A stretch of 64,000 nucleotides of DNA from Phaeosaccion multiseriatum (Eukaryota > Protista > Ochrophyta, other classes), in the NCBI GenBank assembly GCA_965112735.1, contig OZ218951.1, positions 992,001 through 1,056,000 on the forward strand, read 5' to 3'. Made by a program: the position numbers and the translations under genes. Shown piece after piece: positions 1 through 26,804 of the stretch. The notes beneath the pieces are model-generated. The model was not told the origin of the DNA. It made no database searches and saw nothing but the letters and a program-made list of their open reading frames with translations. Position 1 is the first letter of the stretch; every line of letters starts with the position of its first letter.

Positions 1-3000
1 GGCTCTGCCGTTTGGGTATGCGGACTACTCGCAGTGGCAGCGGTCGCGGCTGGACGGGGACAACGGCCTGGCCCTGGAGCAGCTGTTGGAGTACTGGCAG
101 GGGCAGCTAACGGGGGCGTCTACACTGACCCTGCCCCTGGACCGACCGCACGGTGCTTTCGGCCCGCATCTGACGGAGACTGTAAGTCAAGATGGGATTG
201 TGGGGGGGCGCGGCGGGAGTGTCGCTGTTGTTCTGCCGGCTTCGCTGATAGTGAAGCTGAGCAAGCTATGCTCGAGCAGCTCCGCCACGCTGTTTGTGGG
301 GCTCATGGGCGCGTTCCAAGTGCTGCTGGCTCGTGTGTGCGGAGCGGAGGATGTGGTGGTGGGCACTGCGCACTTCGGAAGGGACATGGCGCAAGGCTTG
401 GAAGGAGTGCTGGGATGCTTCGTCAACACCCTCGCGTTCCGTCTGGGCCTGGGAGGAAGCCCCAGCTTTCGGGAGGTGCTGCTTCGCGTACAGGGCGCGT
501 ATCTGGGTGCCATGAAGCATGCCGAGGCACCGTTCCATAAGGTGGTGGAGCGGGCCCAGCTGGGCACAAAGAGTGGTGGCAAGGCGCTACAAGCCTTCTT
601 TGTACTGCAGGAGGGAGATGCCAGCGCCGTGGAGGAGGAGGCCCAGCTGTCAGCTGGAGCACTCCACGAGATCATGACGGAGGAGGCTGGAGAGCGGCAG
701 GCCAATCAGTTTAGCAAGACTGACATCGAGCTAAGCCTTGTGCGCAGCACGGACAGTGCGTCGGACATGCACGGCAGCCTGTGCTACAATACGGCGGTGC
801 TCGACCAGGCCACAATGGAGACCCTGGCGCGGAGCTTCCTGGCGCTGCTGGAGAGTGCAGTGGGCAGGCCGGGCGAGAGCGTGTGGAAGCTGAGTCTCTT
901 GGCACACGAGGACCGTGTGAAGGTGGTGGAGACGCTGAGCGGCGCTGCACTGGTGGCGGAGGATGCCAATGGAGACGAGGAGGGAGGTGCAGAGGAAGCA
1001 TCGCCACCACCGCCCCTCCTGCACGCGGCTTTCGAAGAGATGGCCTCTCGCAGTCCGGAGCAGGAAGCCCTGCACGAGTATGAGACAGGTCGGGTCATGA
1101 GCTACGGGGAGCTGAATGGGCATGCGAATGCGGTGGCATGCATGCTGCAGGGGAGGGGCATGGGGCCGGAGTGCCTGGTGGGGGTGCTGATTGCTGGGGA
1201 CTGCGTGGAGGCGGTTGTGGCAGTGCTGGGCGTGCTCAAGGCCGGGGCGGCGTACGTGCCCCTGGATCCCGAGCATCCCGACGATAGGCTATCGATGATC
1301 GCACAAGATGCCGGGCTGAACGTCGTTCTCACAGCAGCAACTGGGGCGGACCATGTGGAACAAGGCCTCCCCACAGGCGGTAGGTCGGCTCGCTCCGTCG
1401 GAGGCGCGAGCTGTGTGGATGTGAGGACCATGATGCAGCTCGAGGGGGCTGCTACGACAGTCTCTGAGGTGGAGTGTAAGGCCGTCTATAACAATGTGGC
1501 GTATGTGATATACACGTCTGGAAGCACCGGGCGACCGAAGGGTGTGGTGGTCGAGCATAGAAACGCGGCCGGCTTCATGGCGACGATCTACGAAACGTTA
1601 CTGGGCACTATAGACCCTTCGTCACGGGTGCTACTGAGCAGTGCTTTGACTTTCGACATGTCGGTGGCATTGATCTTCGGGGCTCTGTCATGCGGGGCGA
1701 CGCTCTGCCTGGTACAAAGGCTCTCCATGTTGAGCGAGCTGCCAGAGGTTGTGCGCTCGCTTGGGGTATCGTTCTTGGGGTTCACTCCGTCACTACTGTC
1801 TTTGCTCCAACAGCCTCATGGTGGAGAAGTGGGTTTCCCGAGTCTTCGGTCCATCGCGCTTGGGGGAGAGGCCTTACGTCAAGAGCAGGTCGATTACTGG
1901 AAACACCGAGTGCGACTGGGCAATGCTTATGGACCCACAGAGACGGCGGTGGCAGTCACCTGGCACGAGTACACACCGTCTGCCGTGCCGAGCGCGTCCG
2001 TCATCGGCAAGCCTCAAGCCGGCGTGCAAGTGTATGTGGTGGACAAGCGTCTGCAGCTGGTGCCTCGGGGCGTGGATGGCGAGCTGTGCATTGGGGGGAG
2101 ACAGCTGGCGCGTGGGTACTTGAATCGCCCAGAGCTCACGTCGAAGGCCTTCATCCCCGCGCCCTTCTTGGCGGACCAGCGCAGAGTGTATCGTACGGTA
2201 AGTCGAAAAGGTTGCCCATGGGTGTGCGGCTTTGTGTAGTGTGTACATTTGGATTGCTTTTGGCAATCATGTCATGCGGTGAAAAGAAGAGAGCGCAGGG
2301 GGGGGGGGGATGATGGAAGTAGTTCTCTCTGCTACCCTGCGCACTGTTCTGATCTGACGCATCTCAAACTTAAAACCGTTCTGACAGGGCGACTTGGTGC
2401 GGCAGCTGGCAGACGGATCGCGGGTGTTTAGGGGTCGCCGAGACTCTCAAGTGAAGGTGCGCGGCCATCGCATTGAGCTGGGCGAGGTGGAGGCTGCGCT
2501 GCTCCATCAAGAGGGTGTGAGGAGCGCTGTGGCAGCCGTGGACAGAGAACGCGAGACGGTTGTGGCGGCTCTGACACCTTCTAGTGCCGAAGTTGATATG
2601 GTACTGCAAGGAGTGAGCAAGCTGCTACCGGCATACATGGTGCCGAGCACGGCTGTGGCCATGAATGCTCTACCAATGACGAGCAGCGGGAAGCGAGACG
2701 TGAAAGAGCTTCTCAGAGCCATTCGAGAGGCACATGACCATGGCCCTGGCAGGCAGCGGAGCCTAGGCGTCAGCGATGACGCACCTATGGACGACACCAC
2801 CCGTCAAGTGCTCGGCATTATGCGAGAGGCCATTGGGCGACCGGATCTGCGAGCCAGCGGCGACTTGTTCGCCGAGGGAGGCACTTCGCTTGACGCTGCA
2901 AGTGTCACAGCACGCATCCGCGCAGAGGTGCCAGGCTTCGAGGTGAGTGGGATGGAGGGCTGTCTTTCTGGTGTGGCCGGTAGTTCCAAATGGTTTGCTA

Positions 3001-6000
3001 ATATAGTTGTGGACCGTCGGATATCCTTACTCGTTGCTGTACTCAGGCGCTCCAGGTGGCAGAGATGTTCCAGACACCCACCGCGAGGGGTGTGTCTCGC
3101 TTATGTGCGAGCAGGGAGGACACGCTTCCTGGTATGATGATGATATCGCGAGTTGGCGACCATTGTGAGGCTCCAGCGTCGTACCAACAGGAGCACATGC
3201 TGCTGTCGGACCTGGCGCTGCGAGCGGGCGACCCAGACGGGAGGGCGCGATACAACGTGCCCATGCTTCTACCCGTGCCCAGCTCCGAATCGGAGAGAGA
3301 GCCCAGCGAGGTTGTGGACGGCTTGTCCCGTGCCCTGTGCGCCATGGTGGAGCGTCACGATGTTCTGCGATTGGCGCTAGGCTGGTCACCGGAGGGGACG
3401 CTGCAGCAGGTGCGGCTGCAGACCACAGCAGCGGAGGTTGTGGCGTCAGTGCTTCTGTCCGCCGAGGCGAACAGCATCGAAGAGGCCGAGAGCGTGCTAT
3501 TGGCAGAGGCGGGGCGCCTGTTTGACGTGGAGGAGGAAAGGCCACTCTGGCGCAGCACCATCGTCACCGTTGCACCGCCCCAGGAAGGTGAGAAGGAGCA
3601 CCCGCTGGGGCGGCAAGCGGTGCTGTGTGTCTTCCACCACTCCATCATGGATGGGTGGTCATCCAAGCTGTTCTCGCGCGAGCTGTTGGTCCTGTGGGGG
3701 GCTGTCGCGTCTGGCCGAGAGGCGACGAAGGCGCTAGCGGCTCTGCCGTTTGGGTATGCGGACTACTCCCTGTGGCAGCGGTCGCGACTGGACGGGGACA
3801 ACGGCCTGGCCCTGGAGCAGCTGTTGGAGTACTGGCAGGGGCAGCTAACGGGGGCGTCTACACTGACTCTGCCCCTGGACCGACCGCACGGTGCTTTCGG
3901 CCCGCATCTGACGGAGACTGTAGGTCAAGATGGGGTTGTGGGGGGGGGCGGCGGGAGTGTCGCAGTTGTTCTACCGGCTTCGCTGATAGTGAAGCTGAGC
4001 AACCTATGCTCGAGCAGCTCCGTCACGCTGTTTGTGGGGCTCATGGGCGTGTTCCAAGTGCTGCTGGCTCGTGTGTGCGGAGCGGAAGATGTGGTGGTGG
4101 GCACTGCGCACTTCGGAAGGGACATGGCGCAAGGCTTGGAGGGCGTGCTGGGATGCTTCGTCAACACCCTCGTGTTCCGTCTGGGCCTAGGAGGAAGCCC
4201 CAGCTTTCGGGAGGTGCTGCTTCGCGTACAAGTCGCGTATCTGGGTGCCATGAAGCATGCCGAGGCACCGTTCCACAAGGTGGTGGAGCGGGCCCAGCTG
4301 GGTAGAAAGAGTGGTGGCAAGGCGCTACAAGCCTTCTTTGTACTGCAGGAGGGAGATGCCAGCGCCGTGGAGGAGGAGGCCCTGCTGTCAGCTGGAGCAC
4401 TCCACAAGATCATGACGGAGGGTGCTGGAGAGCAGCAGGCCAATCAGTTTAGCAAGACTGACATCGAGCTAAGCCTTGTGCGCAGCACGGGCAGTGCGTC
4501 GGACATGCACGGCAGCCTGTGCTACAATACGGCGGTGCTCGACCAGGCCACAGTGGAGACCCTGGCGCGGAGCTTCCTGGCGCTGCTGGAGAGTGCAGTG
4601 GGCAGGCCGGGCGAGAGCGTGTGGAAGCTGAGTCTCTTGGCACACGAGGACCGTGTGAAGGTGGTGGAGACGTTGAGCGGCGCTGCACTGGTGGCGGAGG
4701 ATGCCAATGGAGACGAGGAGGGAGGTGCAGAGGAAGCATCGCCACCACCGCCCCTCCTGCACGCGGCTTTCGAAGAGGTGTCGTCTCGCAGTCCGGAGCA
4801 GGAAGCCCTGCACGAGTATGAGACGGGTCGGGTCATGAGCTACGGGGAGCTGAATGGGCATGCGAATGCGGTGGCATGCATGCTGCAGGGGAGAGGCGTA
4901 GGGCCGGAGTGCCTGGTGGGGGTGCTGATTGCTGGGGACTGCGTGGAGGCGATTGTGGCAGTGCTGGGCGTGCTCAAGGCCGGGGCGGCGTACGTGCCCC
5001 TGGATCCCGAGCATCCCGACGATAGGCTATCGATGATCGCACAAGACGCCGGGCTGAGCGTCGTTCTGACGACGGCAAAGGCAGCAGGCGAGTCTGAGGT
5101 GCTGGCATCCGCCGATGCCAGCTTAGCGCGGCGTGTCGGAGACGCGAGCTGTGTGGACGTGGTGGCTGTGATGCAAGTGGAGAGTACAGCGGAGCCTGTG
5201 TGCCACGCGGTGGGCGAGAGCATGGCGTACGTGATTTTCACGTCGGGAAGCACCGGGCTGCCGAAGGGCGTGATGATTGAGCACAGAAGCACGGCCTGCT
5301 TCATGGCGACTCTCTACGAAGAGGAACTGACGATAACGGCATCTTCTCGTGTGCTCCTGAGTGCTGCTCTGACATTTGATGCGTCTGTGGAGCTGCTGTT
5401 CGGGACGTTGTCGTGTGGGGCGACGCTGTGCTTGGCAGAGAAGGGCTCCATGCTGAACGACCTGCCGGAGCTGATACGGTCTTTGAAGGTGACGGACATT
5501 CATTGCACCCCTTCACTGCTGTCGCTGCTTCGGCCGCACGACATCGCCACAGGGGCGCAGGAGGCTACCCTACGGTCGATCGCTTTGGGTGGGGAACCGA
5601 TAAAGCAAGACCAAGTGGACATGTGGAGGCACCGTGTGCGCCTTGTGAATAGCTACGGCCCAACCGAGGCAACTATTGCCGTGATCGCACATGAGTACTC
5701 CTCTAGGGCTCTGTCGAGCGCGTCCGTCATCGGCAAGCCTCGAGCCGGCGTGCAAGTGTATGTGGTGGACAAGCGTCTGCAGCTGGTGCCTCAGGGCGTG
5801 GAGGGCGAGCTGTGCATTGGGGGGAGACAGCTGGCGCGTGGGTACTTGAATCGCCCAGAGCTCACGTCGAAGGCCTTCATCCCCGCGCCCTTCTTGGCGG
5901 ACCAGTGCAGAGTGTATCGTACGGTAAGTCGAAAAGGTTGCCCATGGGTGTGCGGCTTTGTGTAGTGTGTACATTTGGATTGCTTTTGGCAATCATGTCA

Positions 6001-9000
6001 TGCGGTGAAAAGAAGAGAGCGCAGGGGGGGGGGGATGGAGGTAGTTCTCTCTGTTGCCCTTTGCACTGCTCTGATCTGACGCGTGTCAAACTTAAAACCG
6101 TTCTGACAGGGTGACTTGGTGCGGCAGCTGGCAGACGGATCGCTGGTGTTTAGGGGTCGCCAAGACTCCCAAGTGAAGGTGCGCGGCTATCGCATTGAGC
6201 TGGGCGAGGTGGAGGCTGCGCTGCTCCATCAAGAGGGGGTGAGGAGCGCTGTGGCCGCCGTGGACAGAGACGGCGAGGCGGTTGTGGCGGCTCTGACACC
6301 TTCAAGTGCCGAAGTTGATATGGTGCTGCAAGGAGTGAGCAAGCTGCTACCGGCATACATGGTGCCGAGCACGGCTGTGGCCATGGATGCTCTACCAATG
6401 ACGAGCAGCGGCAAGCGAGACGTGAAAGGGCTTCTCAGAGCCATTCGAGAGGCACATGACCATGGCCATGGCAGGCAGCGGAGCCTAGGCGTCCGCGATG
6501 ACGCACCTATGGACGACACCACCCGTCAAGTGCTCGGCATTATGCGAGAGGCCATTGGGCGACCGGATCTGCGAGCCAGCGACGACTTGTTCGCCGAGGG
6601 AGGCACTTCGCTTGACGCTGCAAGTGTCACAGCACGCATCCGCGCAGAGGTGCCAGGCTTCGAGGTGAGTGGGATGGAGGGCTGTCTTTCTGGTGTGGCC
6701 GGTAGTTCCAAATGGTTTGCTAATATAGTTGTGGACCGTCGGATATCCTTACTCGTTGCTGTACTCAGGCGCTCCAGGTGGCAGAGATGTTCCAGACACC
6801 CACCGCGAGGGGTGTGTCTCGCTTATGTGCGAGCAGGGAGGACACGCTTCCTGGTATGATGATGATATCGCGAGTTGGCGACCATTGTGAGGCTCCAGCG
6901 TCGTACCAACAGGAGCACATGCTGCTGTCGGACCTGGCGCTGCGAGCGGGCGACCCAGACGGGAGGGCGCGATACAACGTGCCCATGCTTCTACCCGTGC
7001 CCAGCTCCGAATCGGAGAGAGAGCCCAGCGAGGTTGTGGACGGCTTGTCCCGTGCCCTGTGCGCCATGGTGGAGCGTCACGATGTTCTGCGATTGGCGCT
7101 AGGCTGGTCACCGGAGGGGACGCTGCAGCAGGTGCGGCTGCAGACCACAGCAGCGGAGGTTGTGGCGTCAGTGCTTCTGTCCGCCGAGGCGAACAGCATC
7201 GAAGAGGCCGAGAGCGTGCTATTGGCAGAGGCGGGGCGCCTGTTTGACGTGGAGGAGGAAAGGCCACTCTGGCGCAGCACCATCGTCACCGTTGCACCGC
7301 CCCAGGAAGGTGAGAAGGAGCACCCGCTGGGGCGGCAAGCGGTGCTGTGTGTCTTCCACCACTCCATCATGGATGGGTGGTCATCCAAGCTGTTCTCGCG
7401 CGAGCTGTTGGTCCTGTGGGGGGCTGTCGCGTCTGGCCGAGAGGCGACGAAGGCGCTAGCGGCTCTGCCGTTTGGGTATGCGGACTACTCCCTGTGGCAG
7501 CGGTCGCGACTGGACGGGGACAACGGCCTGGCCCTGGAGCAGCTGTTGGAGTACTGGCAGGGGCAGCTAACGGGGGCGTCTACACTGACCCTGCCCCTGG
7601 ACCGACCGCACGGTGCTTTCGGCCCGCATCTGACGGAGACTATAGGTCAAGATGGGATTGTGGGGGGGCGCGGCGGGAGTGTCGCTGTTGTTCTGCCGGC
7701 TTCGCTGATAGTGAAGCTGAGCAACCTATGCTCGGGCAGCTCCGCCACGTTGTTTGTGGGGCTCATGGGCGCGTTCCAAGTGCTGCTGGCTCGTGTGTGC
7801 GGAGCGGAGGATGTGGTGGTGGGCACTGCGCACTTCGGAAGAGACGTGGCGCAAGGCTTGGAGGGCGTGCTGGGATGCTTCGTCAACACCCTCGCGTTCC
7901 GTCTGGGCCTGGGAGGAAGCCCCAGCTTTCGGGAGGTGCTGCTTCGCGTACAAGTCGCGTATCTGGGTGCCATGAAGCATGCCGAGGCACCGTTCCACAA
8001 GGTGGTGGAGCGGGCCCAGCTGGGCAGAAAGAGTGGTGGCAAGGCGCTGCAGGCCTTCTTTTTACTGCAGGAGGGAAATGCCAGCGCCGTGGAGGAGGAG
8101 GCCCAGCTGTCAGCTGGAGCACTCCACAAGATCATGACGGAGGAGGCTGGAGAGCAGCAGGCCAATAATCTTAGCAAGACTGACATCGAGCTATGCCTTG
8201 TGCGCAGCACGGACAGTGCGTCGGACATGCACGGCAGCCTGTGCTACAATATGGCGGTGTTCGACCAGGCCACAGTGGAGACCCTGGCGCGGAGCTTCCT
8301 GGCGCTGCTGGAGAGTGCAGTGGGCAGGCCGGGCGAGAGCGTGTGGAAGCTGAGTCTCTTGGCACACGAGGACCATGTGAAGGTGGTGGAGACGTTGAGC
8401 GGCGCTGCACTGGTGGCGGGGGATGCCAATGGAGATGAGGAGGGAGGTGCAGAGGAAGCATCGCCACCACCGCCCCTCCTGCACGCGGCTTTCGAAGAGA
8501 TGGCCTCTCGTAGTCCGGAGCAGGAAGCCCTGCACGAGTATGAGACGGGTCGAGTCATGAGCTACGGGGAGCTGAATGGGCATGCGAATGCGGTGGCATG
8601 CATGCTGCAGGGGAGAGGCGTGGGGCCGGAGTGCCTGGTGGGGGTGCTGATTGCTGGGGACTGCGTGGAGGCGGTTGTGGCAGTGCTGGGCGTGCTCAAG
8701 GCCGGGGCGGCGTACGTGCCCCTGGATCCCGAGCATCCCGACGATAGGCTATCGATGATCGCACAAGACGCCGGGCTGAGTGTCGTTCTGACGACGGCAA
8801 AGGCAGTAGGCGAGTCTGAGGGGCTGGTAACCGCCGATGCCAGCTTAGCGCGGCGTGTCGGAGACGCGAGCTGTGTGGACGTGGTGGCTGTGATGCAAGT
8901 GGAGAGTACAGCGGAGCCTGTGTGCCACGCCGTGGGCGAGAACATGGCGTACGTGATCTACACATCCGGTAGTACCGGCCGGCCAAAGGGCGTGATGATT

Positions 9001-12000
9001 GAGCACAGAAGCACGGCCAGCTTCATGGCGACTCTCTACGAAGAGGAACTGACGATAACGGCATCTTCTCGTGTGCTCCTGAGTGCTGCTTTGACATTTG
9101 ATGTGTCTGTGGCGTCGCTGTTTGGGCCGTTGTCGTGTGGGGCGACGCTGTGCTTGGCAGAGAAGGGCTCCATGCTGAACGACCTGCCGGAGGTGATACG
9201 GTCTTTGAGGGTAACAGACATGTACTGCACCCCTTCACTGCTGTCGCTGCTTCGACCGGATGACATCACCAATGGAGCTAAGGAGGCCACCTTACGGTCC
9301 ATCGCATTGATTGGGGAGCCGATCAAGGAAGGCCAAGTGGACATGTGGAGGCGCAGTGTTCGCCTTGTCAATAGCTACGGCCCAACAGAGGCGACGGTTT
9401 CCGCTACCGCACATGAGTACAGTCCGGGTGCCCTGTCGAGTGGGTTCGTCATCGGCAAGCCTCGAGCCGGCGTGCAAGTGTATGTGGTGGACAAGCGTCT
9501 GCAGCTGGTGCCTCAGGGCGTGGAGGGCGAGCTGTGCATTGGGGGGAGACAGCTGGCGCGTGGGTACTTGAATCGCCCAGAGCTCACGTCGCAGGCCTTC
9601 ATCCCCGCGCCCTTCCTGACGGATCAGCGCAGAGTGTATCGTACGGTAAGTCGCAAAGGTGGCCCATGGGTGTGCGGCTTTGTGTGTGTGCGTGTGTTGT
9701 GTGTACATTTGGCTTGCTTTTGGCCTGTCATGCGGTGAAAAGAAGAGAGCGCAGGGGGGGGGGGATGGAGGTAGTTCTCTTTGCTGCCCTGTGCACTGTT
9801 CTGATATGACGCATCTCAAACTTAACACGTTCTGACAGGGTGACTTGGTGCGGCAGCTGGCAGACGGATCGCTGGTGTTTAGGGGTCGCCGAGACTCTCA
9901 AGTGAAGGTGCGCGGCCATCGCATTGAGCTGGGCGAGGTGGAGGCTGCGCTGCTCCATCAAGAAGGTGTGAGGAGCGCTGTGGCAGCCGTGGACATTGAG
10001 CGCGAGACGGTTGTGGCGGCTCTGACACCTTCTAGCGCCGAAGTCGAGATGGTGCTGCAAGGAGTGAGCAAGCTGCTACCGGCATACATGGTGCCGAGCA
10101 CGGCTGTGGCCATGGATGCTCTACCGATGACGAGCAGCGGCAAGCGAGACGTGACAGAGGTTCTCAGAGCCATTCGAGAGGCACATGACCATGGCCCTGG
10201 CAGGCAGCGGAGCCTAGGCGTCCGCGATGACGCACCTATGGACGACACCACCCGTCAAGTGCTCGGCATTATGCGAGAGGCCATTGGGCGACCGGATCTG
10301 CGAGCCAGCGGCGACTTGTTCGCCGAGGGAGGCACTTCGCTTGACGCTGCAAGTGTCACAGCACGCATCCGCGCAGAGGTGCCAGGCTTCGAGGTGAGTG
10401 GGATGGAGGGCTGTCTTTCTGGTGTGGCCGGTAGTTCCAAATGGTTTGCTAATATAGTTGTGGACCGTCGGATATCCTTACTCGTTGCTGTACTCAGGCG
10501 CTCCAGGTGGCAGAGATGTTCCAGACACCCACCGCGAGGGGTGTGTCTCGCTTATGTGCGAGCAGGGAGGACACGCTTCCTGGTATGATGATGATATCGC
10601 GAGTTGGCGACCATCGTGAGGCTCCAGCGTCGTACCAACAGGAGCACATGCTGCTGTCGGACCTGGCGCTGCGAGCGGGCGACCCAGACGGGAGGGCGCG
10701 ATACAACGTGCCCATGCTGCTACCCGTGTCCAGCTCCGAATCGGAGAGAGAGCCCAGCGAGGTTGTGGACGGCTTGTCCCGTGCCCTGTGTGCCATGGTG
10801 GAGCGTCACGATGTTCTGCGATTGGCGCTAGGCTGGTCACCGGAGGGGACGCTGCAGCCGGTGCGGCTGCAGACCACAGCAGCGGAGGTTGTGGCGTCAG
10901 TGCTCCTGTCCGCCGAGGCGAACAGCATCAAAGAGGCCGAGAGCGTGCTATTGGCAGAGGCGGGGCGCCTGTTTGACTTGGAGGAGGAAAGGCCACTCTG
11001 GCGCAGCACCATCGTCACCGTTGCACCGCCCCAGGATGATGAGAAGGAGCACCCGCTGGGGCGGCAAGCGGTGCTGTGTGTCTTCCACCACTCCATCATG
11101 GATGGGTGGTCATCCAAGCTGTTCTCGCGCGAGCTGTTGGTCATGTGGGGGGCTGTCGTGTCTGGCCGAGAGGCGACGAAGGCGCTAGCGGCTCTGCCGT
11201 TTGGGTATGCGGACTACTCGCGGTGGCAACGGTCGCGACTGGACGGGGACAACGGCCTGGCCCTGGAGCAGCTGTTGGAGTACTGGCAGGGGCAGCTAAC
11301 GGGGGCGTCTTCACTGACCCTGCCCCTGGACCGACCGCACGGTGCTTTCGGCCCGCATCTGACGGAGACTGTAAGTCAAGATGGGATTGTGGGGGGGGGC
11401 GGCGGGAGTGTTGCTGTTGTTCTGCCGGCTTCGCTGATAGTGAAGCTGAGCAACCTATGCTCGAGCAGCTCCGTCACGCTGTTTGTGGGGCTCATGGGCG
11501 CGTTCCAAGTGCTGCTGGCTCGTGTGTGCGGAGCGGAGGATGTGGTGGTGGGCACTGCGCACTTCGGAAGAGACGTGGCGCAAGGCTTGGAGGGCGTGCT
11601 GGGATGCTTCGTCAACACCCTCGCGTTCCGTCTGGGCCTGGGAGGAAGCCCCAGCTTTCGGGAGGTGCTGCTTCGCGTACAAGTCGCGTATCTGGGTGCC
11701 ATGAAGCATGCCGAGGCACCGTTCCACAAGGTGGTGGAGCGGGCCCAGCTGGGCAGAAAGAGTGGTGGTAAGGCGCTACAAGCCTTCTTTGTACTGCAGG
11801 AGGGAAATGCCAGCGCCGTGGAGGAGGAGGCCCAGCTGTCAGCTGGAGCACTCCACAAGATCATGACGGAGGAGGCTGGAGAGCAGCAGGCCAATAATCT
11901 TAGCAAGACTGACATCCAGCTAAGCCTTGTGCGCCGCAGCACGGACAGTGCGTCGGACATGCACGGCAGCCTGTGCTACAATACGGCGGTGCTCGACCAG

Positions 12001-15000
12001 CCCACAGTGGAGACCCTGGCGCGGAGCTTCCTGGCGCTGCTGGAGAGTGCAGTGGGCAGGCCGGGCGAGAGCGTGTGGAAGCTGAGTCTCTTGGCACACG
12101 AGGACCGTGTGAAGGTGGTGGAGACGCTGAGCGGCGCTGCACTGGTGGCGGGGGATGCCAATGGAGATGAGGAGGGAGGTGCAGAGGAAGCATCGCCACC
12201 ACCGCCCCTCCTGCACGCGGCTTTCGAAGAGGTGGCCTCTTGTAGTCCGGAGCAGGAAGCCCTGCACGAGTATGAGACAGGTCGATTGATGAGCTACGGG
12301 GAGCTGAATGGGCATGCGAATGCGGTGGCGTGCATGCTGCAGGGGAGAGGCGTGGGGCCGGAGTGCCTGGTGGGGGTGCTGATTGCTGGGGACTGCGTGG
12401 AGGCGGTTGTGGCAGAGCTGGGCGTGCTCAAGGCCGGGGCGGCGTACGTGCCCCTGGATCCCGAGCATCCCGACGATAGGCTGTCGATGATCGCACAAGA
12501 CGCCGGGCTGAGCGTCGTTCTCACAGCAGCATCTGGGGCGGACCATGTGGAACAAGGCCTCCCCACAGGAGGTAGGTCGGCTCGCACCGTTGGAGGCGCG
12601 AGCTGCGTGGATGTCAGGACCATGATGCAGCTCGAGGGGGCTGCTACGACAGTCTCTGAGGTGGAGTGTAAGGCCGCCGATATCAATGTGGCGTATGTGA
12701 TATACACATCTGGAAGCACCGGGCGACCCAAGGGTGTGGTGGTCGAGCATAGAAACACGGCCAGCTTCATGGCGACTCTCTACGAGGCGGAATTGGGCAC
12801 CATAGACCCTTCGTCACGGGTTCTGCTGAGCAGCGCTTTGACTTTCGATATGTCAGTGGCGTTGATCTTCGGGGCTCTGTCATGCGGGGCGACGCTGTGC
12901 CTGGTGCAAAAGCTCTCCATGTTGAGCGAGCTGCCAGAGGTTGTGCGCTCGCTAGGGGTATCGTTCTTGGTGTGCACTCCGTCACTTCTGTCTTTGCTCC
13001 CACAGCCTCATGGTGGAGAAGCGGCTTTCCCGAGTCTTCGGTCGATCGCGCTTGGGGGAGAGGCCTTACATCAAGAGCAGGTCGACTACTGGAAGCACCG
13101 AGTGCGACTGGGCAATGCTTATGGACCCACAGAGACGGCGATGGCAGTCACCTGGCACGAGCACACACCTGGGGCCCTGTCGAGTGGGTTCGTCCTCGGC
13201 AAGCCTCGAGCCGGCGTGCAAGTGTATGTGGTGGACAAGCGTCTGCAGCTGGTGCCTCGGGGCGTGGATGGCGAGCTGTGCATTGGGGGGAGACAGCTGG
13301 CGCGTGGGTACTTGAATCGCCCAGAGCTCACGTCGAAGGCCTTCATCCCCGCGCCCTTCTTGACGGACCAGCGCAGGGTGTATCGTACGGTAAGTGGAAA
13401 CGGTTGCCCATGGGTGTGGCTTTGTGTGTGTGCGTGTGTTGTGTGTACATTTGGCTTGCTTTTGGCCTGTCATGCGGTGAAAAGAAGAGAGCGCAGGGGG
13501 GGGGGGATGGAGGTAGTTCTCTTTGCTGCCCTGTGCACTGTTCTGATATGACGCATCTCAAACTTAACACGTTCTGACAGGGTGACTTGGTGCGGCAGCT
13601 GGCAGACGGATCGCTGGTGTTTAGGGGTCGCCGAGACTCTCAAGTGAAGGTGCGCGGCCATCGCATTGAGCTGGGCGAGGTGGAGGCTGCGCTGCTCCAT
13701 CAAGAAGGTGTGAGGAGCGCTGTGGCAGCCGTGGACATTGAGCGCGAGACGGTTGTGGCGGCTCTGACACCTTCTAGCGCCGAAGTCGAGATGGTGCTGC
13801 AAGGAGTGAGCAAGCTGCTACCGGCATACATGGTGCCGAGCACGGCTGTGGCCATGGATGCTCTACCGATGACGAGCAGCGGCAAGCGAGACGTGACAGA
13901 GGTTCTCAGAGCCATTCGAGAGGCACATGACCATGGCCCTGGCAGGCAGCGGAGCCTAGGCGTCCGCGATGACGCACCTATGGACGACACCACCCGTCAA
14001 GTGCTCGGCATTATGCGAGAGGCCATTGGGCGACCGGATCTGCGAGCCAGCGGCGACTTGTTCGCCGAGGGAGGCACTTCGCTTGACGCTGCAAGTGTCA
14101 CAGCACGCATCCGCGCAGAGGTGCCAGGCTTCGAGGTGAGTGGGATGGAGGGCTGTCTTTCTGGTGTGGCCGGTAGTTCCAAATGGTTTGCTAATATAGT
14201 TGTGGACCGTCGGATATCCTTACTCGTTGCTGTACTCAGGCGCTCCAGGTGGCAGAGATGTTCCAGACACCCACCGCGAGGGGTGTGTCTCGCTTATGTG
14301 CGAGCAGGGAGGACACGCTTCCTGGTATGATGATGATATCGCGAGTTGGCGACCATCGTGAGGCTCCAGCGTCGTACCAACAGGAGCACATGCTGCTGTC
14401 GGACCTGGCGCTGCGAGCGGGCGACCCAGACGGGAGGGCGCGATACAACGTGCCCATGCTTCTACCCGTGTCCAGCTCCGAATCGGAGAGAGAGCCCAGC
14501 GAGGTTGTGGACGGCTTGTCCCGTGCCCTGTGTGCCATGGTGGAGCGTCACGATGTTCTGCGATTGGCGCTAGGCTGGTCACCGGAGGGGACGCTGCAGC
14601 AGGTGCGGCTGCAGACCACAGTAGCGGAGGTTGTGGCGTCAGTGCTTCTGTCCGCCGAGGCGAACAGCATCGAAGAGGCCGAGAGCGTGCTATTGGCAGA
14701 GGCGGGGCGCCTGTTTGACGTGGAGGAGGAAAGGCCACTCTGGCGCAGCACCATCGTCACCGTTGCACCGCCCCAGGATGATGAGAAGGAGTACCCGCTG
14801 GGGCGGCAAGCGGTGCTGTGCGTCTTCCATCACTCCATCATGGATGGGTGGTCATCCAAGCTGTTCTCGCGCGAGCTGTTGGTCCTGTGGGGGGCTGTCG
14901 CGTCTGGCCGAGAGGCGACGAAGGCGCTAGCGGCTCTGCCGTTTGGGTATGCGGACTACTCCCTGTGGCAGCGGTCGCGACTGGACGGGGACAACGGCCT

Positions 15001-17580
15001 GGCCCTGGAGCAGCTGTTGGAGTACTGGCAGGGGCAGCTAACGGGGGCGTCTACACTGACCCTGCCCCTGGACCGACCGCACGGTGCTTTCGGCCCGCAT
15101 CTGACGGAGACTATAGGTCAAGATGGGATTGTGGGGGGGCGCGGCGGGAGTGTCGCTGTTGTTCTGCCGGCTTCGCTGATAGTGAAGCTGAGCAACCTAT
15201 GCTCGAGCAGCTCCGCCACGTTGTTTGTGGGGCTCATGGGCGCGTTCCAAGTGCTGCTGGCTCGTGTGTGCGGAGCGGAGGATGTGGTGGTGGGCACTGC
15301 GCACTTCGGAAGAGACGTGGCGCAAGGCTTGGAGGGCGTGCTGGGATGCTTCGTCAACACCCTCGCGTTCCGTCTGGGCCTGGGGGGAAACCCCAGCTTT
15401 CGGGAGGTGCTTCTTCGCGTGCAAGTCGCGTATCTGGGTGCCATGAAGCATGCCGAGGCACCGTTCCACAAGGTGGTGGAGCGGGCCCAGCTGGGCAGAA
15501 AGAGTGGTGGCAAGGCGCTACAAGCCTTCTTTGTACTGCAGGAGGGAAATGCCAGCGCCGTGGAGGAGGAGGCCCAGCTGTCAGCTGGAGCACTCCACAA
15601 GATCATGACGGAGGAGGCTGGAGAGCAGCAGGCCAATAATCTTAGCAAGACTGACATCGAGCTATGCCTTGTGCGCAGCACGGACAGTGCGTCGGACATG
15701 CACGGCAGCCTGTGCTACAATATGGCGGTGTTCGACCAGGCCACAGTGGAGACCCTGGCGCGGAGCTTCCTGGCGCTGCTGGAGAGTGCAGTGGGCAGGC
15801 CGGGCGAGAGCGTGTGGAAGCTGGGTCTCTCGGCACACGAGGACCGTGTGAAGGTGGTGGAGACGCTGAGCGGCGCTGCACTGGTGGCGGAGGATGCCAA
15901 TGGAGATGAGGAGGGAGGTGCAGAGGAAGCATCGCCACCACCGCCCCTCCTGCACGCGGCTTTCGAAGAGATGGCCTCTCGTAGTCCGGAGCAGGAAGCC
16001 CTGCACGAGTATGAAACAGGTCGGGTGATGAGCTACGGGGAGCTCAATGGGCATGCGAATACGGTGGCGTGCATGCTGCAGGGGAGGGGCGTGCGGCCGG
16101 AGTGCCTGGTGGGGGTGCTGATTGCTGGGGACTGCGTGGAGGCGGTTGTGGCAGTGCTGGGCGTGCTCAAGGCCGGGGCGGCGTACGTGCCCCTGGATCC
16201 CGAGCATCCCGATGACAGGCTGTCGATGATCGCACAAGACGCAGGGCTGAGCGTCGTTCTGACGACGGCAAAGGCAGCAGGCGAGTCTGAGGGGCTGGAA
16301 TCCGCCGATGCCAGCTTAGCGCGGCGTGTCGGAGACGTGAGCTGTGTGGACGTGGTGGCTGTGATGCAAGTGGAGAGTACCGCGGAGCCTGTGTGCCACG
16401 CGGTGGGCGAGAGCATGGCGTACGTGATCTACACATCCGGTAGCACAGGCCGGCCAAAGGGCGTGATGATTGAGCACAGAAGCACGGCCTGCTTCATGGC
16501 GACTCTCTACGAATTCGAACTGACAGTGACAGCATCTTCGCGCGTGCTTCTGAGCAGCGCTTTGACTTTCGATGTGTCTATGGCGTTGCTGTTCGGGACG
16601 TTGTCGTGTGGGGCGACGCTGTGTTTGGCAGAGAAGGGCTCCCTGCTGAACGACCTGCCGGAGCTGATACGGTATTTCGGGGTGACGGAAGCTGAATTCA
16701 CCCCCTCACTGTTGTCACTGCTGAAACCGGGAGACATTATGGAGGAGGGCACCTTACGGTCCATCGCTTTGGGTGGGGAGACGGTGAAGCAGGATCAAGT
16801 GGACATGTGGAGGCACCATGTGCGCCTCGTTAATAGCTACGGTCCAACAGAGGCGACGGTTTCCGCGACCGCACATGAGTACTCCTCTGGGGCCCTGTCG
16901 AGCGCATCTGTCATCGGCAAGCCTCTGACCGGCGTGCAAGTGTATGTGGTGGACAAGCGTCTGCAGCTGGTGCCTCAGGGCGTGGAGGGCGAGCTGTGCA
17001 TTGGGGGGAGACAGCTGGCGCGTGGGTACTTGAACCGCCCAGAGCTCACGTCGAAGGCCTTCATCCCCGCGCCCTTCTTGACGGACCAGCGCAGAGTGTA
17101 TCGTACGGTAAGTCGAAAAGGTTGCCCATGGGTGTGCGGCTTTTTGTGTGTGCGTGTATTGTGTGTACATTTGGCTTGCTTTTGGCATGTCATGCAGTGA
17201 CAAGCAGAGCGCAGGGGGGGGTGGAGGTAGTTTTCTCTGCTGCCTATGGTGTAGTGTTCTGATCTGACGCGTCTCAAACATAACACGTTCGGACAGGGTG
17301 ACTTGGTGCGGCAGCTGGCAGACGGATCGCTGGTGTTTAGCGGTCGCCGAGACTCTCAAGTGAAGGTGCGCGGCTATCGCATTGAGCTGGGCGAGGTGGA
17401 GGCTGCGCTGCTCCATCAACGGGGGGTGGTGAGCGCTGTGGCAGCGGTGGACAGAGAGCGCGAGATGATTGTGGCGGCTCTGACACCTTCTAGCGCCGAA
17501 GTTGAGATGGTGCTGCAAGGAGTGAGCAGACTGCTACCGTCATACATGGTGCCGAGCACGGCTGTGGCCGTGGATGCTGT
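1..17580 (+). repeat. Tandem array of about 3.73-kb NRPS module units, introns included (units start at 3047, 6769, 10498, 14240; the first is partial)
   Basis: Near-identical sequence recurs at offsets of 3722, 3729 and 3742 bp. The 104-bp intron reads identically in four copies. Confidence 0.97.
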
Positions 17581-20500
17581 GCTGTGGGTGCCGTGGCCGT
17601 GGATGCTCTACCGATGACGAGCAGTGGAAAGAGAGACGTGAAAGAGGTGCTGAGGATGATCAAGGCGGAAGCGAAGGGAAACAAAACCGCTGTAAAGGCG
17701 TCCGACGGCGACGAGGCGTTAGGCGACACTGCCCGCCAAGTGCTGGGCATCCTGAGGCAGGCCACGGAGCAGCCTCACTTGCAGGCCAATGACGACTTGT
17801 TCGCAGAGGGAGGAACATCGTTGAGTGCGGCTCAGGCGGTTTCGCGTATCCGGGCAGAGGTTCCCGGCTTCGAGGTGAGTGACTTTGAGCACAAAGCTTT
17901 CGTTGTGTTGTGTCTCGCCCTTGTTGCTGACCCTGTTGTGTCTGTGTGACTCCTGCAGGCTCTGACAGTAATGCAGATCTTCCAGAACCGAACCGCTGTG
18001 GCACTTTCAGTGCTTGGTGCCGCGGAGGAGGGCGGAGGTAGAGGAGACAGCGGGCAAGAGTCGTCGGCAGCAAGCGAAGCCCGACTGAAGGACGAGGAGC
18101 GCGATTTCGAGTCAGCCGGTGAAGAAGGGGAAGCGATGAAAGCGCACCGGAGGCCCAGCACTGGCAACCAAGTGGTGCTGCAGGTTCTGAGTTGGCTGCT
18201 CGTTGTTGCTGTGCTCAGCGGCGGGTTTTCTCCCAGCTTCGTTGGCGTGTACTTGTTACGTAGAGCAGGGCGCGGCAATACGACGATTCTTTCTTGGCTA
18301 CCACTCCTCGTCGTCGTGTCAGTAAGTTGGGTCCTTGCCCTGATTGCAGTGGTGAAGTGGGCTGTGCTTGGCCGCATGCGACCGGGGCGATGGTCCGTGA
18401 GGAGCTCATACTACTGGCGGTGGTATGCTGTGCAGAATGTGCTGAAACTGGCCGCACGGCTGATTTCTGTTCTCCGTGGTACCTTCGCCTTGCGGGTGTG
18501 GAACCGCCTGCTGGGGGCACGAATCAGTGGAAGCGCGCGCTTAGAGAGCTGGCTGCTGCACGAGCATGACTTGATCGAGATTGGAGAAGGGGCCGTGATC
18601 GAGTACGGAGCCGTCATTCGCCCGTCTGTCATTACTCGAAATGGCATGCTCCATGTCCATCGCGTGAGGATCGGGAAGGGAGCAAAGGTGGGCATACTGT
18701 CCAACGTGTGTCCGTCTCCCTGGGAGGGGGGGCAGACGCAGGAGGGGGAGGAGGGCCTGGATGAGGAGCTAAAGGACTTGGTCATCGGCGAGGGGATGGA
18801 GCTCGGTCCGTACGCGTCGCTCGGCCATTCGCTACTTTCTGGCCCGCTGGCAGAGGTCGAACGCGAGCAGGGGCTGCGGCGGGCAGGAAAGGAGCTTTTT
18901 GCCTTGGCCCTGCTTTCAGTGACCAACTTGGGGTCGTACCTGCTGCCCCTCTGGATACTTGTGCTTGCCGGTGGGGGTGATGTGGACGACGCGGGGGAGA
19001 GTGTCCCCATCTTCGCTCGTACATTGGCGTTCCCCGTGCTGCTGCTGATCGGAAGCATGCTGTACATGGTGGCAGTGCTATCGATACAGCGTGTATTCTT
19101 GCTGCTCGGCCCCAGCGCCACCACACGGCTGTCACTCGGAGTTCTTCAGGAGAGTCCTCTCTTCAAGGTTGGCTTCCTTCTTGTGGCAAAATGTGGGCTC
19201 AACCGTGTTTTTGCTTCCGCCATGGGCGCCAAGCTGGAGCGGGGGTGCGCACTTTCTACCCTTCCTATCACTACGATATGGGAGAAGCTCAGGATAGGGG
19301 AAAACTCCCAGCTCGCGGGCTCTGTGCACCTTTTCGCTGATGCGGGTGCCCGTGGAGACGAGGATACGCAAAGCATCACAATCGGCCGCTTCAGCATTGT
19401 TGCGAACGAAGCTCTTCTCCTAGGCGGAGCTTGCATTGGGGACGGAAGCACGGTCGCAGATCGCACCGTTGTGAGTGGAGACGACGACGTACCGTGCAAC
19501 TCTTCTGTAGTGGGCGCCCCTCGGCCGTTTGTATTGCCGAACCCAATGAGTGCTGCTGCTGAGAAGGATGGCGTCGATGCAGCAGCCAGTCTTCCTGTTC
19601 CGTCGAGGATGCAGAATGCGCTGCGTGGGCTTGCGACTGTGGTGCTGCTCCTCGGCGCATGGTGTCCGGGGGTGTTGATCAGCGCGTCGGTAGCTGACCT
19701 GCTGTTGCGCAATGGCCATGTGCATGGGGCTGCCGCCTTCTGTCCCTTCGTCCTTCCAGAAGTGGTGGCGAGGGATACACTGAGCGAGAGCCATACTGGA
19801 GTGTTCTTTCTTGTGTTGGGGAGCTTCGTCTTTCAAGTTCTCATGGCCTTGGCGGGCGCTTGCTCAGCCATTCATTTCCATCGAGTTCTGGGCACATCCT
19901 TGCATGCCAAAGAGGGGCAGCCTCCCATAGCGCTCGATTCGCCTTCGCTGGATATATACCACTTGGGCAGCATGGCCCCTGGCTTCATTGAGGATCTCTG
20001 TATCAAGTACTTCGCGGGCGGGCCGGTGTACGCGGCGTGGCTGCGGCTGCTGGGGGCAAGTGTTGGCAAGGACACATCTTTATGGCTCAGGCCTACTGAT
20101 GCGCATCTTCTCGTCATTGGAGACGAAGCGGTGGTGTTGCAAGACTCCACAATCTTCGCGCACACCATCGAAGGCACGGGAGGGTTCGTCTTCAAGACTG
20201 TGCAAGTCGAGGAGAACGCGTGGCTCGGAGCAAGGGCTCACTTGCAGCCTGGATGCCGCGTTGAAGCAGGAGCTAACGTTGGTGACTTGAGCATGGCCAT
20301 GAGAGGTGAAAGTGTCACCAATTCAAAGCGTGGAGACGTGGCGTGGGTGGGCATACCGCTGAGAAAGCACGTCTTGTCCTCCCGAGCGCTCGCTGCGCCG
20401 CGTCACGGAACGGAGCTGGACAGCGGCAGAGCCCCGGCAGAAGAGCGAACCCTTCGCAACAAGGGCAGAGGGGGGTCGAGGAGACATGTGCTTCGAGAGA

Positions 20501-20595
20501 GAAGCAGCCCTCGCCGAGGAGGAGCGTCTTTCCGGCGGAAGAGTGTGCATCAGCCTGGGGAGACCAAGAATGCGGATAGATTCGATGTAGTTTGA
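1..20595 (+). CDS. Giant multimodular NRPS, 5'-truncated by the window edge: [C]-A-T-(C-A-T)x4-Pls/PosA-like terminal membrane domain, >6,300 aa if the frameshift at 17,579-17,607 is ignored. Exons: <1-2197, 2388-2942, 3047-5923, 6110-6664, 6769-9645, 9839-10393, 10498-13389, 13581-14135, 14240-17107, 17297-17874, 17959-20595
   Basis: C-domain motifs: [41 protein letters not shown]-domain motifs: [22 protein letters not shown], FDxSV, Nx[23 protein letters not shown]|[38 protein letters not shown]-domain motif: [10 protein letters not shown]. All ten GT-AG introns are phase 0 and rejoin split motifs, and every internal exon is a multiple of 3 except 17297-17874. Confidence 0.95.
17959..20595 (+). 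CDS. Terminal exon of the NRPS: end of the last T domain plus a Pls/PosA-like (NRPS_term_dom, TIGR02353-like) domain with three units of TM helices and hexapeptide/left-handed beta-helix repeats
   Basis: [23 protein letters not shown]...[19 protein letters not shown]...[11 protein letters not shown]. The second and third units carry AMGAKLERG...LRIGENSQL and [12 protein letters not shown]...[10 protein letters not shown]. Paired hydrophobic segments precede each unit. No TE (GxSxG) or reductase domain was seen. Confidence 0.85.
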   Translation, partial: ALTVMQIFQNRTAVALSVLGAAEEGGGRGDSGQESSAASEARLKDEERDFESAGEEGEAMKAHRRPSTGNQVVLQVLSWLLVVAVLSGGFSPSFVGVYLLRRAGRGNTTILSWLPLLVVVSVSWVLALIAVVKWAVLGRMRPGRWSVRSSYYWRWYAVQNVLKLAARLISVLRGTFALRVWNRLLGARISGSARLESWLLHEHDLIEIGEGAVIEYGAVIRPSVITRNGMLHVHRVRIGKGAKVGILSNVCPSPWEGGQTQEGEEGLDEELKDLVIGEGMELGPYASLGHSLLSGPLAEVEREQGLRRAGKELFALALLSVTNLGSYLLPLWILVLAGGGDVDDAGESVPIFARTLAFPVLLLIGSMLYMVAVLSIQRVFLLLGPSATTRLSLGVLQESPLFKVGFLLVAKCGLNRVFASAMGAKLERGCALSTLPITTIWEKLRIGENSQLAGSVHLFADAGARGDEDTQSITIGRFSIVANEALLLGGACIGDGSTVADRTVVSGDDDVPCNSSVVGAPRPFVLPNPMSAAAEKDGVDAAASLPVPSRMQNALRGLATVVLLLGAWCPGVLISASVADLLLRNGHVHGAAAFCPFVLPEVVARDTLSESHTGVFFLVLGSFVFQVLMALAGACSAIHFHRVLGTSLHAKEGQPPIALDSPSLDIYHLGSMAPGFIEDLCIKYFAGGPVYAAWLRLLGASVGKDTSLWLRPTDAHLLVIGDEAVVLQDSTIFAHTIEGTGGFVFKTVQVEENAWLGARAHLQPGCRVEAGANVGDLSMAMRGESVTNSKRGDVAWVGIPLRKHVLSSRALAAPRHGTELDSGRAPAEERTLRNKGRGGSRRHVLRERSSPRRGGASFRRKSVHQPGETKNADRFDVV

Positions 20596-20651
20596 TCCCT
20601 CTAGTAAGATACGGGCGATTGATGTATACTTGGCTGGCTGGTCCCGGACCC

Positions 20652-20831
20652 ATGATCGATGGGTGGATCCGCTTATCCGCCATGGCGCGCATCTCCGTGC
20701 TTGTGAACGAGCTCCGTGAGCGCGTGGACCAATTGTTGTTCGACAAGATGGAGTGCCCGGGTCTTGACATCACCGCAAGCCCGGTGGTACATGTGCTGGT
20801 GACGCTGCTGCTCACGGACGGGATGGCCTAG
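20652..20831 (+). pseudogene. Orphan C-terminal fragment of a DEAH-box RNA helicase (DHX57/DHX29/DHX36-like)
   Basis: IDGWIRLSAMARISVLVNELRERVDQLLFDKMECPGLDITASPVVHVLVTLLLTDGMA* matches the typical C-terminal pattern DGWI.F.A...A.L...LR..LD.LL..KI..P..D. No other helicase exons are in the window. Confidence 0.6.
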
Positions 20832-22045
20832 GGGGAGGGGAGGGGAGGAGGAGCGGAGGGGAAGGACAGGGAGGAGGGAGGAGGGAGGAGGAAGGAGCGA
20901 GGAAGGGAGAGAGGAAGGCCGAAGAGTCGTGGTAGAGGAGGGGCCAGAGAAGACAAGGGGGATGCGGCTTACATGATGCAGGCAGCGTGTGGAGCACGCA
21001 GCGAGAGGCCAAGTACGAGGTGCAGAAAGGAGCACAGCAGGTAGGGATGGCACTGGACGCGGAGGGAGGCATGGCAGGGGGGGGGGGGGGGAAGCGAATC
21101 GCGGCGGAGGAGGGAGCACACCATCCAAGGGGGGCAGCAAAGGGAGGCGTGGTGGAAGAGGGAGCACAGCACGTCAGGGGGGGGGGGAGGGAGGCGGGGT
21201 GGGGGGGGGGGCGTGGGGGCAAAAGTGGAGGAGAGAGTGGTGCCGATAGCAGAGGGAAGACCCCTTCCGGGGGCGGAGGAGGGGGTGGAAGTGGAGGTGG
21301 GGGCACAGTAGGGGGTGATTTGAGGACTGCGCCGGCTCACGGCGCTGGGAGAATGTAAGTGTATGGGCAGGACATCGACATTGGATATCGAGGAGGTCCG
21401 TTTCTGTCAAATTCGGAACAGTGGGAGGGGCGGTTCAGTGACGAGGCCGTGTAGGGGGGCAAAGTGACAAGGCCGTGTAGTAGCTAGGCAAAGGAGTATC
21501 AGGACAAGGACATCAAGGACATTGAGGCAAGTGTAAGGACAGGACATCATCGAAAGGGCTTTTTTTATATATAGCTATATACACACACTCTACTTAATCT
21601 ATCTTGGAGTGAGCGGTAGGCCTCTAGGAGGTTACTGAGAGCTGTTACGGGAAGGGTCGTCACTGCCGTGGCTCGGAGGCTAACAAGAAGCACAAAATGC
21701 ACCGCCTAGCTACTCGTCGATACTCGCAGGGGTGCCTGATCGAATGCTGGAGGCATATGAGCGGCCTATACATTTCACACCCCTGTTGCCACTGCGCTGT
21801 GCTGCTCCTGTGCTGCTCCTGCTCCTGCTTTGCTGCTCCTCCTTCACTGCTCCGCCCCACGCCTTGGGCGCCGCGTCGGCCCCACCCAATCCTCGGCTCC
21901 AGACTGGCCTAGAAGCCTAGGCCTAGAGACGAAATTCGGCCGGCCTAGGGGGGCCGCAGGCCCCCGGCCTAGGCCTAGAGGGGGCCGCAGGTCCCCGGCC
22001 TAGCTAGGCCTATTCTTGGCGCAGCCCCCCCGGCCTTGGCCTAGA

Positions 22046-22236
22046 TCGACCCTGGACAACAAGGTTACGGTGTGCGCCGGCCGTAATCAGTAATCAGCCC
22101 CCGGCCGGCGCAAAATCAGTAATCAGGCCGGCTGGTGCGGCTGTAAGCAACCAGACCGGCTGGCGCCGGTCATAATCAGTAATCAGGCCGGCTGCGCCGG
22201 CCGTAATCAGAATCAGATAATCTTGTCCAGGGTCGA
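22046..22236. mobile_element. MITE-like 191-bp element with 14-bp terminal inverted repeats
   Basis: TCGACCCTGGACAA (22,046-22,059) is the exact reverse complement of TTGTCCAGGGTCGA (22,223-22,236). The interior holds four GCCGGC...TAATCAG(T)AATCAG subrepeats. No clear target-site duplication. Confidence 0.5.
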
Positions 22237-22593
22237 CTCCCTCCCTCCCTCCCTCCCTCCCTCCCTCCCTCCCTCCCTCCCTCCCTCCCTCTCTCCCTCC
22301 CTCTCTCCCTCTCTCTCTCCCTCTCTCCCTCCCTGCCTCCCTCCCTGCCTGCCTCCCTCTCTCCCTCCCTCCCTGCCTCCCACCCTCCCTCCCTCCCTCC
22401 CTCTCTCCCTCCCTCTCTCCCTCCCTTCCTCCCTCCCTCCCTCCCTCTCTCCCTCCCTCCCTCCCTCCCTCCCTCCCTCCCTCCCTCCCTCCCTCCCTCC
22501 CTCCCTCCCTCCCTCCCTCCCTCCCTCCCACCCACCCTTCCTCCCTCCCTCCCTCCCTCCCTCCCTCCCTCCCTCCCTCCCTCCCTCCCTCCC
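22237..22593. repeat. (CCCT)n microsatellite
   Basis: Visible directly in the sequence. Confidence 0.97.
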
Positions 22594-26500: not shown

Positions 26501-26804
26501 TTAAGCGTACGCCAAGCCTCATTCTCTCGCACCTTCCCCCCCCCTCTCTCTCTCTCTCTTGTACACACGCCTCCCCTCTCTCGCTGTCTGTCTCCCGCTC
26601 TCCCTCTCTCGCATCCCCTCCCTCTTTCCCGCGCACACACACACGCACATCGCTTGACACTACCAGGCCAACACCAACACAATGGTGAGTTTATTTGCGG
26701 GCATTTGCATGAACCTCTACCTGCGCACCAAGCTCGGCAAGTACTTCCCCTCGCTGCAGACGAGGAGGAAAGATGGGGAACTCAAGAAGGCGGCCAAGGC
26801 ATAG
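23540..26804 (+). CDS. Plastid-targeted DUF3611 (Tic21/PIC1-related) membrane protein, about 7 exons
   Basis: Signal peptide ...LIPCISG-FAVP (ASAFAP-like). Spliced exons give SLRAASIVFRR|..WIGWWVQVITSTVSAVILLFSN, SFFSIFWTFSY, GLWINLAGMALALIGAEQIVGTLVAKVL, RALDMFVVQ|ANTNTM. Stop TAG at 26,802-26,804. Confidence 0.8.

Follow-up and report, generated by a model that had tools for sequence, protein, structure and literature searches.

A multimodular nonribosomal peptide synthetase of an ochrophyte-like alga ends in a Pls-type membrane domain that may release the chain by a single acyl transfer

End domains of the Pls type have been characterised only as polymerases behind one adenylation-thiolation (A-T) unit, and none of them has a solved structure. 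What such a domain does at the end of a long assembly line is the question raised by a stretch of 64,000 nucleotides (nt) from Phaeosaccion multiseriatum (contig OZ218951.1, positions 992,001 to 1,056,000; here called the window), in which a gene for a nonribosomal peptide synthetase (NRPS) with at least five condensation-adenylation-thiolation (C-A-T) modules runs into a terminal exon for a Pls-type membrane domain. We give a probability of about 0.5 to the reading that this domain makes one acyl transfer of the finished chain to an outside acceptor at the membrane.

The gene lies on the forward (+) strand at 2-20595, consists of 11 exons and 10 GT-AG introns, and extends with its 5′ end beyond the window edge; it would make up the 3′ half of a nuclear gene, split by introns, for a megasynthase of an ochrophyte-like alga. 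Five near-identical C-A-T modules with a repeat unit of ~3.72 kb occupy 2-17874. Each module carries a first intron of 186-193 nt in the A domain at YRT/GD and a second one inside the T domain, which is 104 nt long except in the last module, where it measures 84 nt. The features of the gene are as follows:

2-2197, +, exon with the second half of the C domain and the A core of module 1, cut at its 5′ end by the window edge; code DMAGAGAVAK
2388-2942, +, exon with the A1 subdomain (A10 Lys) and the first two-thirds of T1; GGTSL at 2880
3047-5923, +, exon with the end of T1, C2 and the A2 core; code DAEHAGSIAK, Lys-like by prediction
6110-6664, +, exon with the A2 subdomain and T2
6769-9645, +, exon with C3 and the A3 core; code DVAYAISVSK
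9839-10393, +, exon with the A3 subdomain and T3
10498-13389, +, exon with C4 and the A4 core; code DMAVAGAMAK
13581-14135, +, exon with the A4 subdomain and T4
14240-17107, +, exon with C5 and the A5 core; its code DVAEAGSVSK has Glu at position 4
17297-17874, +, exon with the A5 subdomain and the first two-thirds of T5; frameshifted in the present assembly
17564-17592, +, insertion of 29 nt that shifts the frame (duplication of a 15-mer around a 14-nt spacer)
17875-17958, +, GT-AG intron of 84 nt inside T5; spliced junction in run X5
17959-20595, +, terminal exon of 878 amino acids (aa) with the last helices of T5, an acidic linker, the Pls/PosA-type membrane domain (~18136-20370), an Arg-rich tail and the stop codon
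20098-20106, +, third-repeat ExD motif, here D-A-H
20161-20163, +, His676 in the third beta-helix of the terminal domain

Condensation, AMP-binding, AMP-binding_C, and PP-binding domains were found by Pfam in the order expected for an NRPS. The C domains of modules 2-5 contain HHSIMDG (nt 3635, 7357, 11086, and 14828); the His motif of module 1 lies 5′ of the window edge, the C domain there being partial. All five A domains carry the A3 motif, as YTSGSTG or FTSGSTG, and LPMTSSGK with the A10 Lys, and GGTSL is present in all five T domains. By our own reading, the C domains appear to bear LCL-like motifs. No epimerase domain was found in the window, and no thioesterase (TE), reductase or terminal C release domain ends the gene, the terminal exon matching only Hexapep and TIGR02353.

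The terminal exon opens with the last helices of T5, and in an alignment with a T-domain homologue the spliced T5 passes the junction without interruption. Public sequencing runs with the same organism label show many fixed differences from the window and therefore come from another strain. One of them, X5 (labelled 'DNA?'), skips the intron 17108-17296 and has no depth past the 3′ end of the gene, so that it was taken as RNA; its two loose ends match unique sequences flanking the intron 17875-17958. Since T5 is split across this last intron and its junction occurs in the RNA-like run, modules and terminal domain constitute one gene. Among 24 differences between strains in the terminal exon, which are the best-supported subset only, 13 are synonymous and 11 non-synonymous (26% synonymous expected; p = 0.003), and indels seen in X4 and X5 are in frame. 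The terminal exon is thus under purifying selection among strains. At 19093-19113, the runs of one sample carry two variant sets, both unlike the window; either the terminal exon has two alleles there or a close paralogue of it is present.

Against TIGR02353, the terminal exon scores with an E-value of 9e-41 in three stretches, reaching 140 bits and staying under the curated cutoff of 423. Hydropathy indicates six hydrophobic segments in three pairs, and the AlphaFold2 model (pLDDT 87, pTM 0.91) consists of three units, each a helix pair followed by a left-handed beta-helix. The fold agrees with Pls-type Atlas models at TM-scores of 0.80-0.82. Structural matches in the PDB are local only (TM-score by query ~0.1) and consist of beta-helix proteins, mainly acyltransferases (LpxA, sugar acetyltransferases) together with gamma carbonic anhydrases, in agreement with the PosA model; a sequence match for the end domain was not found in the PDB. 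Profile and model together show a Pls-family domain that is predicted to sit in the membrane and to fold as a pseudo-trimer of beta-helices. The original prediction, made from the letters alone, had claimed at least five canonical modules joined in one gene to a Pls-type domain of three membrane-plus-hexapeptide units, in place of a thioesterase or reductase, and all of this was borne out.

The closest sequences to the end domain are distant (~20-26% identity over the whole domain); most relatives have the A-T-end layout and Asp-x-Glu pockets. A second, eukaryote-rich set of relatives, here called the sister group, has varied partners. It includes a Chrysoparadoxa enoylreductase-ketoreductase-acyl carrier protein (ER-KR-ACP)-C-A-T-end protein, a polyketide synthase (PKS)-end of Stygiella, a fatty acyl-AMP ligase (FAAL)-PKS-end, a TE-T / C-A-T-end-acyltransferase (AT) locus, and chytrid, dinoflagellate, Goniomonas and plant proteins. 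Some lines of this set contain no amino-acid module, for example the A-like-PKS-PKS-ACP-end of Stygiella and the FAAL-PKS-end of the retrieved homologue P0085. In two trees built under LG, the window domain joins Chrysoparadoxa and homologue P0031 within the sister group (support 97-99), and it stands outside the Pls clade in both (split support 100). A C domain occurs in 2 of the 157 retrieved end-domain homologues and more than one C domain in none of them. As had been assumed before, no characterised enzyme with this architecture was found; the ending is not unique as had been implied, PKS-NRPS-Pls and C-A-T-Pls proteins being present in public data (homologues P0013 and P0148). A search for proteins of 2400-7600 aa with the end domain returned the query only, at a low sensitivity that gives no proof of rarity, and neither a single-sequence metagenome scan nor an exact-match look-up with the terminal ORF gave a hit. 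On the Chrysoparadoxa contig (1-2076), an open frame with AT-like sequence extends from the annotated start in the upstream direction as far as the edge of the contig. CAM9397790.1 therefore probably represents only the end of a larger, truncated PKS-NRPS. In the metagenome JGI 3300068088, two eukaryote-like contigs carry Pls-type ends behind double amine oxidase-T-T and FAAL-ACP-ketosynthase (KS)-AT-KR arrangements.

Ten polar columns reach 90-100% conservation within the Pls group and only 0-25% in the sister group (E372, S374, D395, N424, R497, R504, E609, Q674, D681, and R682). Two of them are matched in the window protein, where S374 meets Ser and N424 meets Asn; the other eight residues (E372, D395, R497, R504, E609, Q674, D681, and R682) are absent. 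Residues common to both groups, namely His676, Arg95, Asp145, and Arg637, are retained. His676, conserved to 98% in the Pls group and 92% in the sister group, is a candidate catalytic base. Four further changes (D657H, E655D, K582H, and R361S) affect positions that are 83-100% conserved in both groups. The D-A-H in place of ExD in the third repeat is unusual in both groups, the Asp being found in 100% of the Pls group and Asp, Glu or Asn in the sister group.

The module repeats are 85-96% identical in DNA, and the C domain and early A core are 94-100% identical; the pocket region is only 57-62% identical between the type of modules 1/4 and that of modules 2/3/5. Since the intron positions are common to all modules, the duplication took place in a eukaryote, and the array is shown to have arisen by duplicating one intron-bearing module that diversified mainly in the A-domain pocket. 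Identical stretches of ~820 nt, introns included, in modules 2/3 and 3/4 (6769-7590; ~9700-10600) represent very recent conversion or duplication, and the module number may therefore differ among strains. The C domains are 30-36% identical to bacterial ones, and among the retrieved proteins the best whole-module BLAST match is Chrysoparadoxa CAM9397790.1 (34% identity), which is also the best match of the T domain of module 5.

Substrate codes were read by motif position and are predictions only. The code of PosA is DMEHNGTVSK, position 2 is Ala in the homologues that activate Lys, and the ornithine (Orn) domain BacB-M2 has Glu at position 4 (PMC10522769). Because its Asp1/Ala2/Glu3/His4 compares with the Asp1/Met2/Glu3/His4 of PosA and the Ala2 of the homologues, module 2 looks Lys-like, while module 5 looks Orn-like because it shares a position-4 Glu with Orn domains of the bacitracin type. 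The pockets of modules 1, 3, and 4 look small or hydrophobic. Glu at code position 3 occurs only in the internal module 2, and module 5, which adjoins the end domain, has Ala there.

An intact single frame, taken for granted in the original prediction, is not present. The small exon of module 5, 17297-17874, measures 578 nt, which is no multiple of three, and with the 29-nt insertion the translation as assembled ends at 17615-17617, ahead of the A10 Lys, T5 and the terminal domain. The downstream domains were analysed by reading through the insertion with X. Rescue by a cryptic intron was considered and rejected, as every GT..AG pair that would restore the frame without losing the A10 Lys removes or garbles the conserved LPxYMVP stretch. 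A DNA contig of 459 nt from X4 spans 17551-18038 with three mismatches and without the 29 nt, and it continues through the last intron into the terminal exon. The present copy is therefore a null allele or an assembly error, and an insertion-free allele exists in another strain. Coming from another strain, the public runs are silent on whether the insertion is genuine in the assembled one; from its duplicated-plus-templated look, we would favour, by a slight preference, a repair scar over a base-calling error. The depth of X5, which stems from a second sample, falls over the module-5-specific stretch 17561-17785, and an X5 contig carries T sequence of the internal-module type up to 17785 and of the module-5 type beyond. 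This points to recombination (gene conversion or unequal crossover) with another breakpoint in the last module of that strain. One-base deletions at 15483, 17420, 18726, and 20470 were seen in a minority of contigs of run X1 only and are probably read errors.

For the function of the enzyme, we prefer a single transfer. The modules would build a defined peptide containing two basic residues, one Lys-like (module 2) and one Orn-like (module 5), and the terminal domain would stand in for a thioesterase by receiving the finished chain from T5. The chain would then be passed once, probably via the conserved His of the third beta-helix, to a free amine or hydroxyl acceptor at the membrane, with an amino acid, a polyamine, a sugar or a lipid head group as candidates, and a (lipo)peptide would be released. 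Pls takes a carrier-bound donor and a free acceptor, so that a capped donor would give a single transfer by default; in addition, the PKS-only partners in the sister group indicate that the end domain requires no amino-acid monomer. Several points weigh against this reading. An approximately unbiased (AU) test does not reject a placement with Pls (p = 0.257), and the branches are long; the exchange of the third-repeat Asp657 for His could weaken catalysis; and substrate-code predictions for algae are unreliable (PMC7073580).

Intramolecular release, in which a side-chain amine of the chain itself attacks, is possible though unlikely. The Lys-like residue of module 2 would then yield a bacitracin-like lariat, or the terminal Orn-like residue a delta-lactam, giving a cyclic lipopeptide. 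The PosA-like code of module 2 with the Ala of Lys-activating homologues and the BacB-M2-like Glu of module 5 are consistent with such a reaction, as is isopeptide formation being the native chemistry of Pls-type domains; however, the close relatives end PKS-only lines or single-module hybrids without an internal amine, six membrane helices would be unnecessary, and the codes are predicted only. That A5-T5-end acts as a Pls unit, in which each finished chain is attached to a side-chain amine, either that of the product before it or that of free Orn/Lys, we regard as distinctly unlikely. The same holds for the product, an isopeptide backbone bearing (lipo)peptides as side chains or a polycation tail with the lipopeptide as its primer, and for its proposed form, a bottle-brush with a poly-ornithine-like backbone and a defined (lipo)peptide repeat unit extruded at the membrane; no isopeptide-linked polymer of defined (lipo)peptide repeats is described in the literature searched. 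The Orn-like last module, the complete three-repeat fold with its retained His, and the kinship with Pls left standing by the AU test argue for polymerisation, and an N-acyl cap would leave side-chain isopeptide links possible. Against it speak the loss of most Pls-group-specific polar residues, the Ala of module 5 where the characterised polymerases all have Glu at code position 3 beside the end domain, the placement of the domain with non-Pls partners in the best trees, and the bulk of the repeat unit. Of the two outcomes originally envisaged, ligation of the peptide into a polymer or transfer to an acceptor, the transfer is thus better supported, and a head-to-tail heteropeptide polymer is weaker because the end domain groups with copies behind PKS or FAAL carriers that load no amino acid and because acidic and polar residues nearly invariant in Pls-type polymerases are lost.

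The four exchanges at otherwise conserved positions and the frameshift in the present assembly could also mean that the end domain is catalytically degenerate and helps in export or anchors the protein in the membrane, with chain release left to a different enzyme, or that the gene is decaying. This is improbable in view of the purifying selection on the terminal exon, the spliced transcripts in X5, the in-frame indels in X4 and X5, the retained His676 and the confident, complete fold. Hardly credible is a terminal exon forming a gene of its own, or a tandem array that arose as an assembly artefact. An ATG-initiated open reading frame (ORF) of 874 aa does start at 17971, and the ~820-nt identical stretches would fit misassembly; but the last helices of T5 are encoded at the start of the exon, the splice junction was observed and a DNA contig joins T5 to the terminal exon, while the five pockets differ and two pocket types are present in independent runs. 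We therefore retain the single transfer to an outside acceptor as our reading.

Downstream of the NRPS gene, an ORF-like stretch of ~65 codons (20633-20830, +), helical-looking and with no other copy in the window, directly follows the stop codon. At 21900-22950, a CCTAGG-rich palindromic repeat cluster around a CTCC microsatellite resembles a repeat island or a mobile element of the non-autonomous kind. A DUF3611 gene (23540-26800, +) encodes a signal peptide and then a transit-like stretch led by Phe, as is typical for plastid targeting in heterokonts. This apparent bipartite plastid leader and the Chrysoparadoxa origin of the best relatives of modules and terminal domain lend indirect support to an algal source. 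An intron-split sulfotransferase gene (28243-29922, -; Sulfotransfer_1, E-value 1.8e-37), located ~8 kb downstream of the NRPS gene, possibly encodes a tailoring enzyme, and a ribulose-phosphate 3-epimerase is encoded by a single open stretch (35316-36203, -; E-value 1.4e-70). A siderophore reading gained no support, no N-hydroxylase being found among the neighbouring ORFs scanned.

If the terminal domain unloads a multimodular line, it represents an undescribed class of chain release, and eukaryotic microbes would then appear to use it on PKS, FAAL, and NRPS lines. No published multimodular NRPS with a Pls-type ending was found in a literature search that left most subscription papers outside it; one-module versions of Pls-ended NRPSs are already in public data, unstudied. 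Long NRPSs had been called uncommon in algae, in line with published surveys showing rare, short ones. The largest algal NRPS in a survey of 32 genomes has three C domains (PMC4661987), compared with at least four complete C domains and a partial fifth here. The gene also displays module duplication and pocket swapping inside a eukaryote, and, if the lesion is real, a null-allele strain and intact-allele strains offer a ready comparison for finding the product.

Among known systems, the cationic homo-polyamino-acid synthetases Pls, PosA and PDAP of TIGR02353 (PMC10522769, PMC4668381) come nearest in the end domain, which in both cases comprises ~730 residues after an A-T unit, with six membrane helices in three pairs, three beta-helix repeats, a conserved His and RLLGA-type motifs in repeats 1 and 3. 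However, these synthetases are single A-T-end proteins of ~1300 aa without a C domain, whereas here the end domain comes after at least five C-A-T modules; the score is 140 of 423 bits, identity is ~20-26%, most Pls-specific polar residues are gone, and the adjacent A domain has DVAE, with Asp1 but with Glu at position 4 instead of position 3. By architecture, score and adjacent pocket, the enzyme is not a member of the Pls/PosA family; its end domain is homologous to that of Pls and probably uses related acyl-transfer chemistry. Chrysoparadoxa australica CAM9397790.1, likewise an ochrophyte NRPS ending in the same domain and its nearest neighbour in the trees, is an unstudied hybrid PKS-NRPS (ER-KR-ACP-C-A-T-Pls-type end) with one NRPS module, no basic-residue pocket and a preserved ExD motif (ENDL). 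With bacterial multimodular lipopeptide NRPSs and PKS-NRPSs of the bacitracin and surfactin type, the window NRPS shares the canonical C (HHxxxDG), A and T motifs, but it is eukaryotic, intron-split, recently duplicated in tandem and without thioesterase or reductase. LpxA/LpxD and the maltose and galactoside acetyltransferases, its top structural matches, have the same beta-helix repeats, and LpxA/LpxD accept acyl groups from a carrier-protein thioester; these acyltransferases are homotrimers of soluble subunits, whereas the window domain combines three repeats and membrane helices in one chain. Finally, the polymalate synthetase of Aureobasidium is described as a transmembrane A-T-'C-like' NRPS forming esters (PMC11905612). 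Likened to the window enzyme by description only, it is a fungal, single-module enzyme making a homopolymer; its ester formation would show that such enzymes need no amine.

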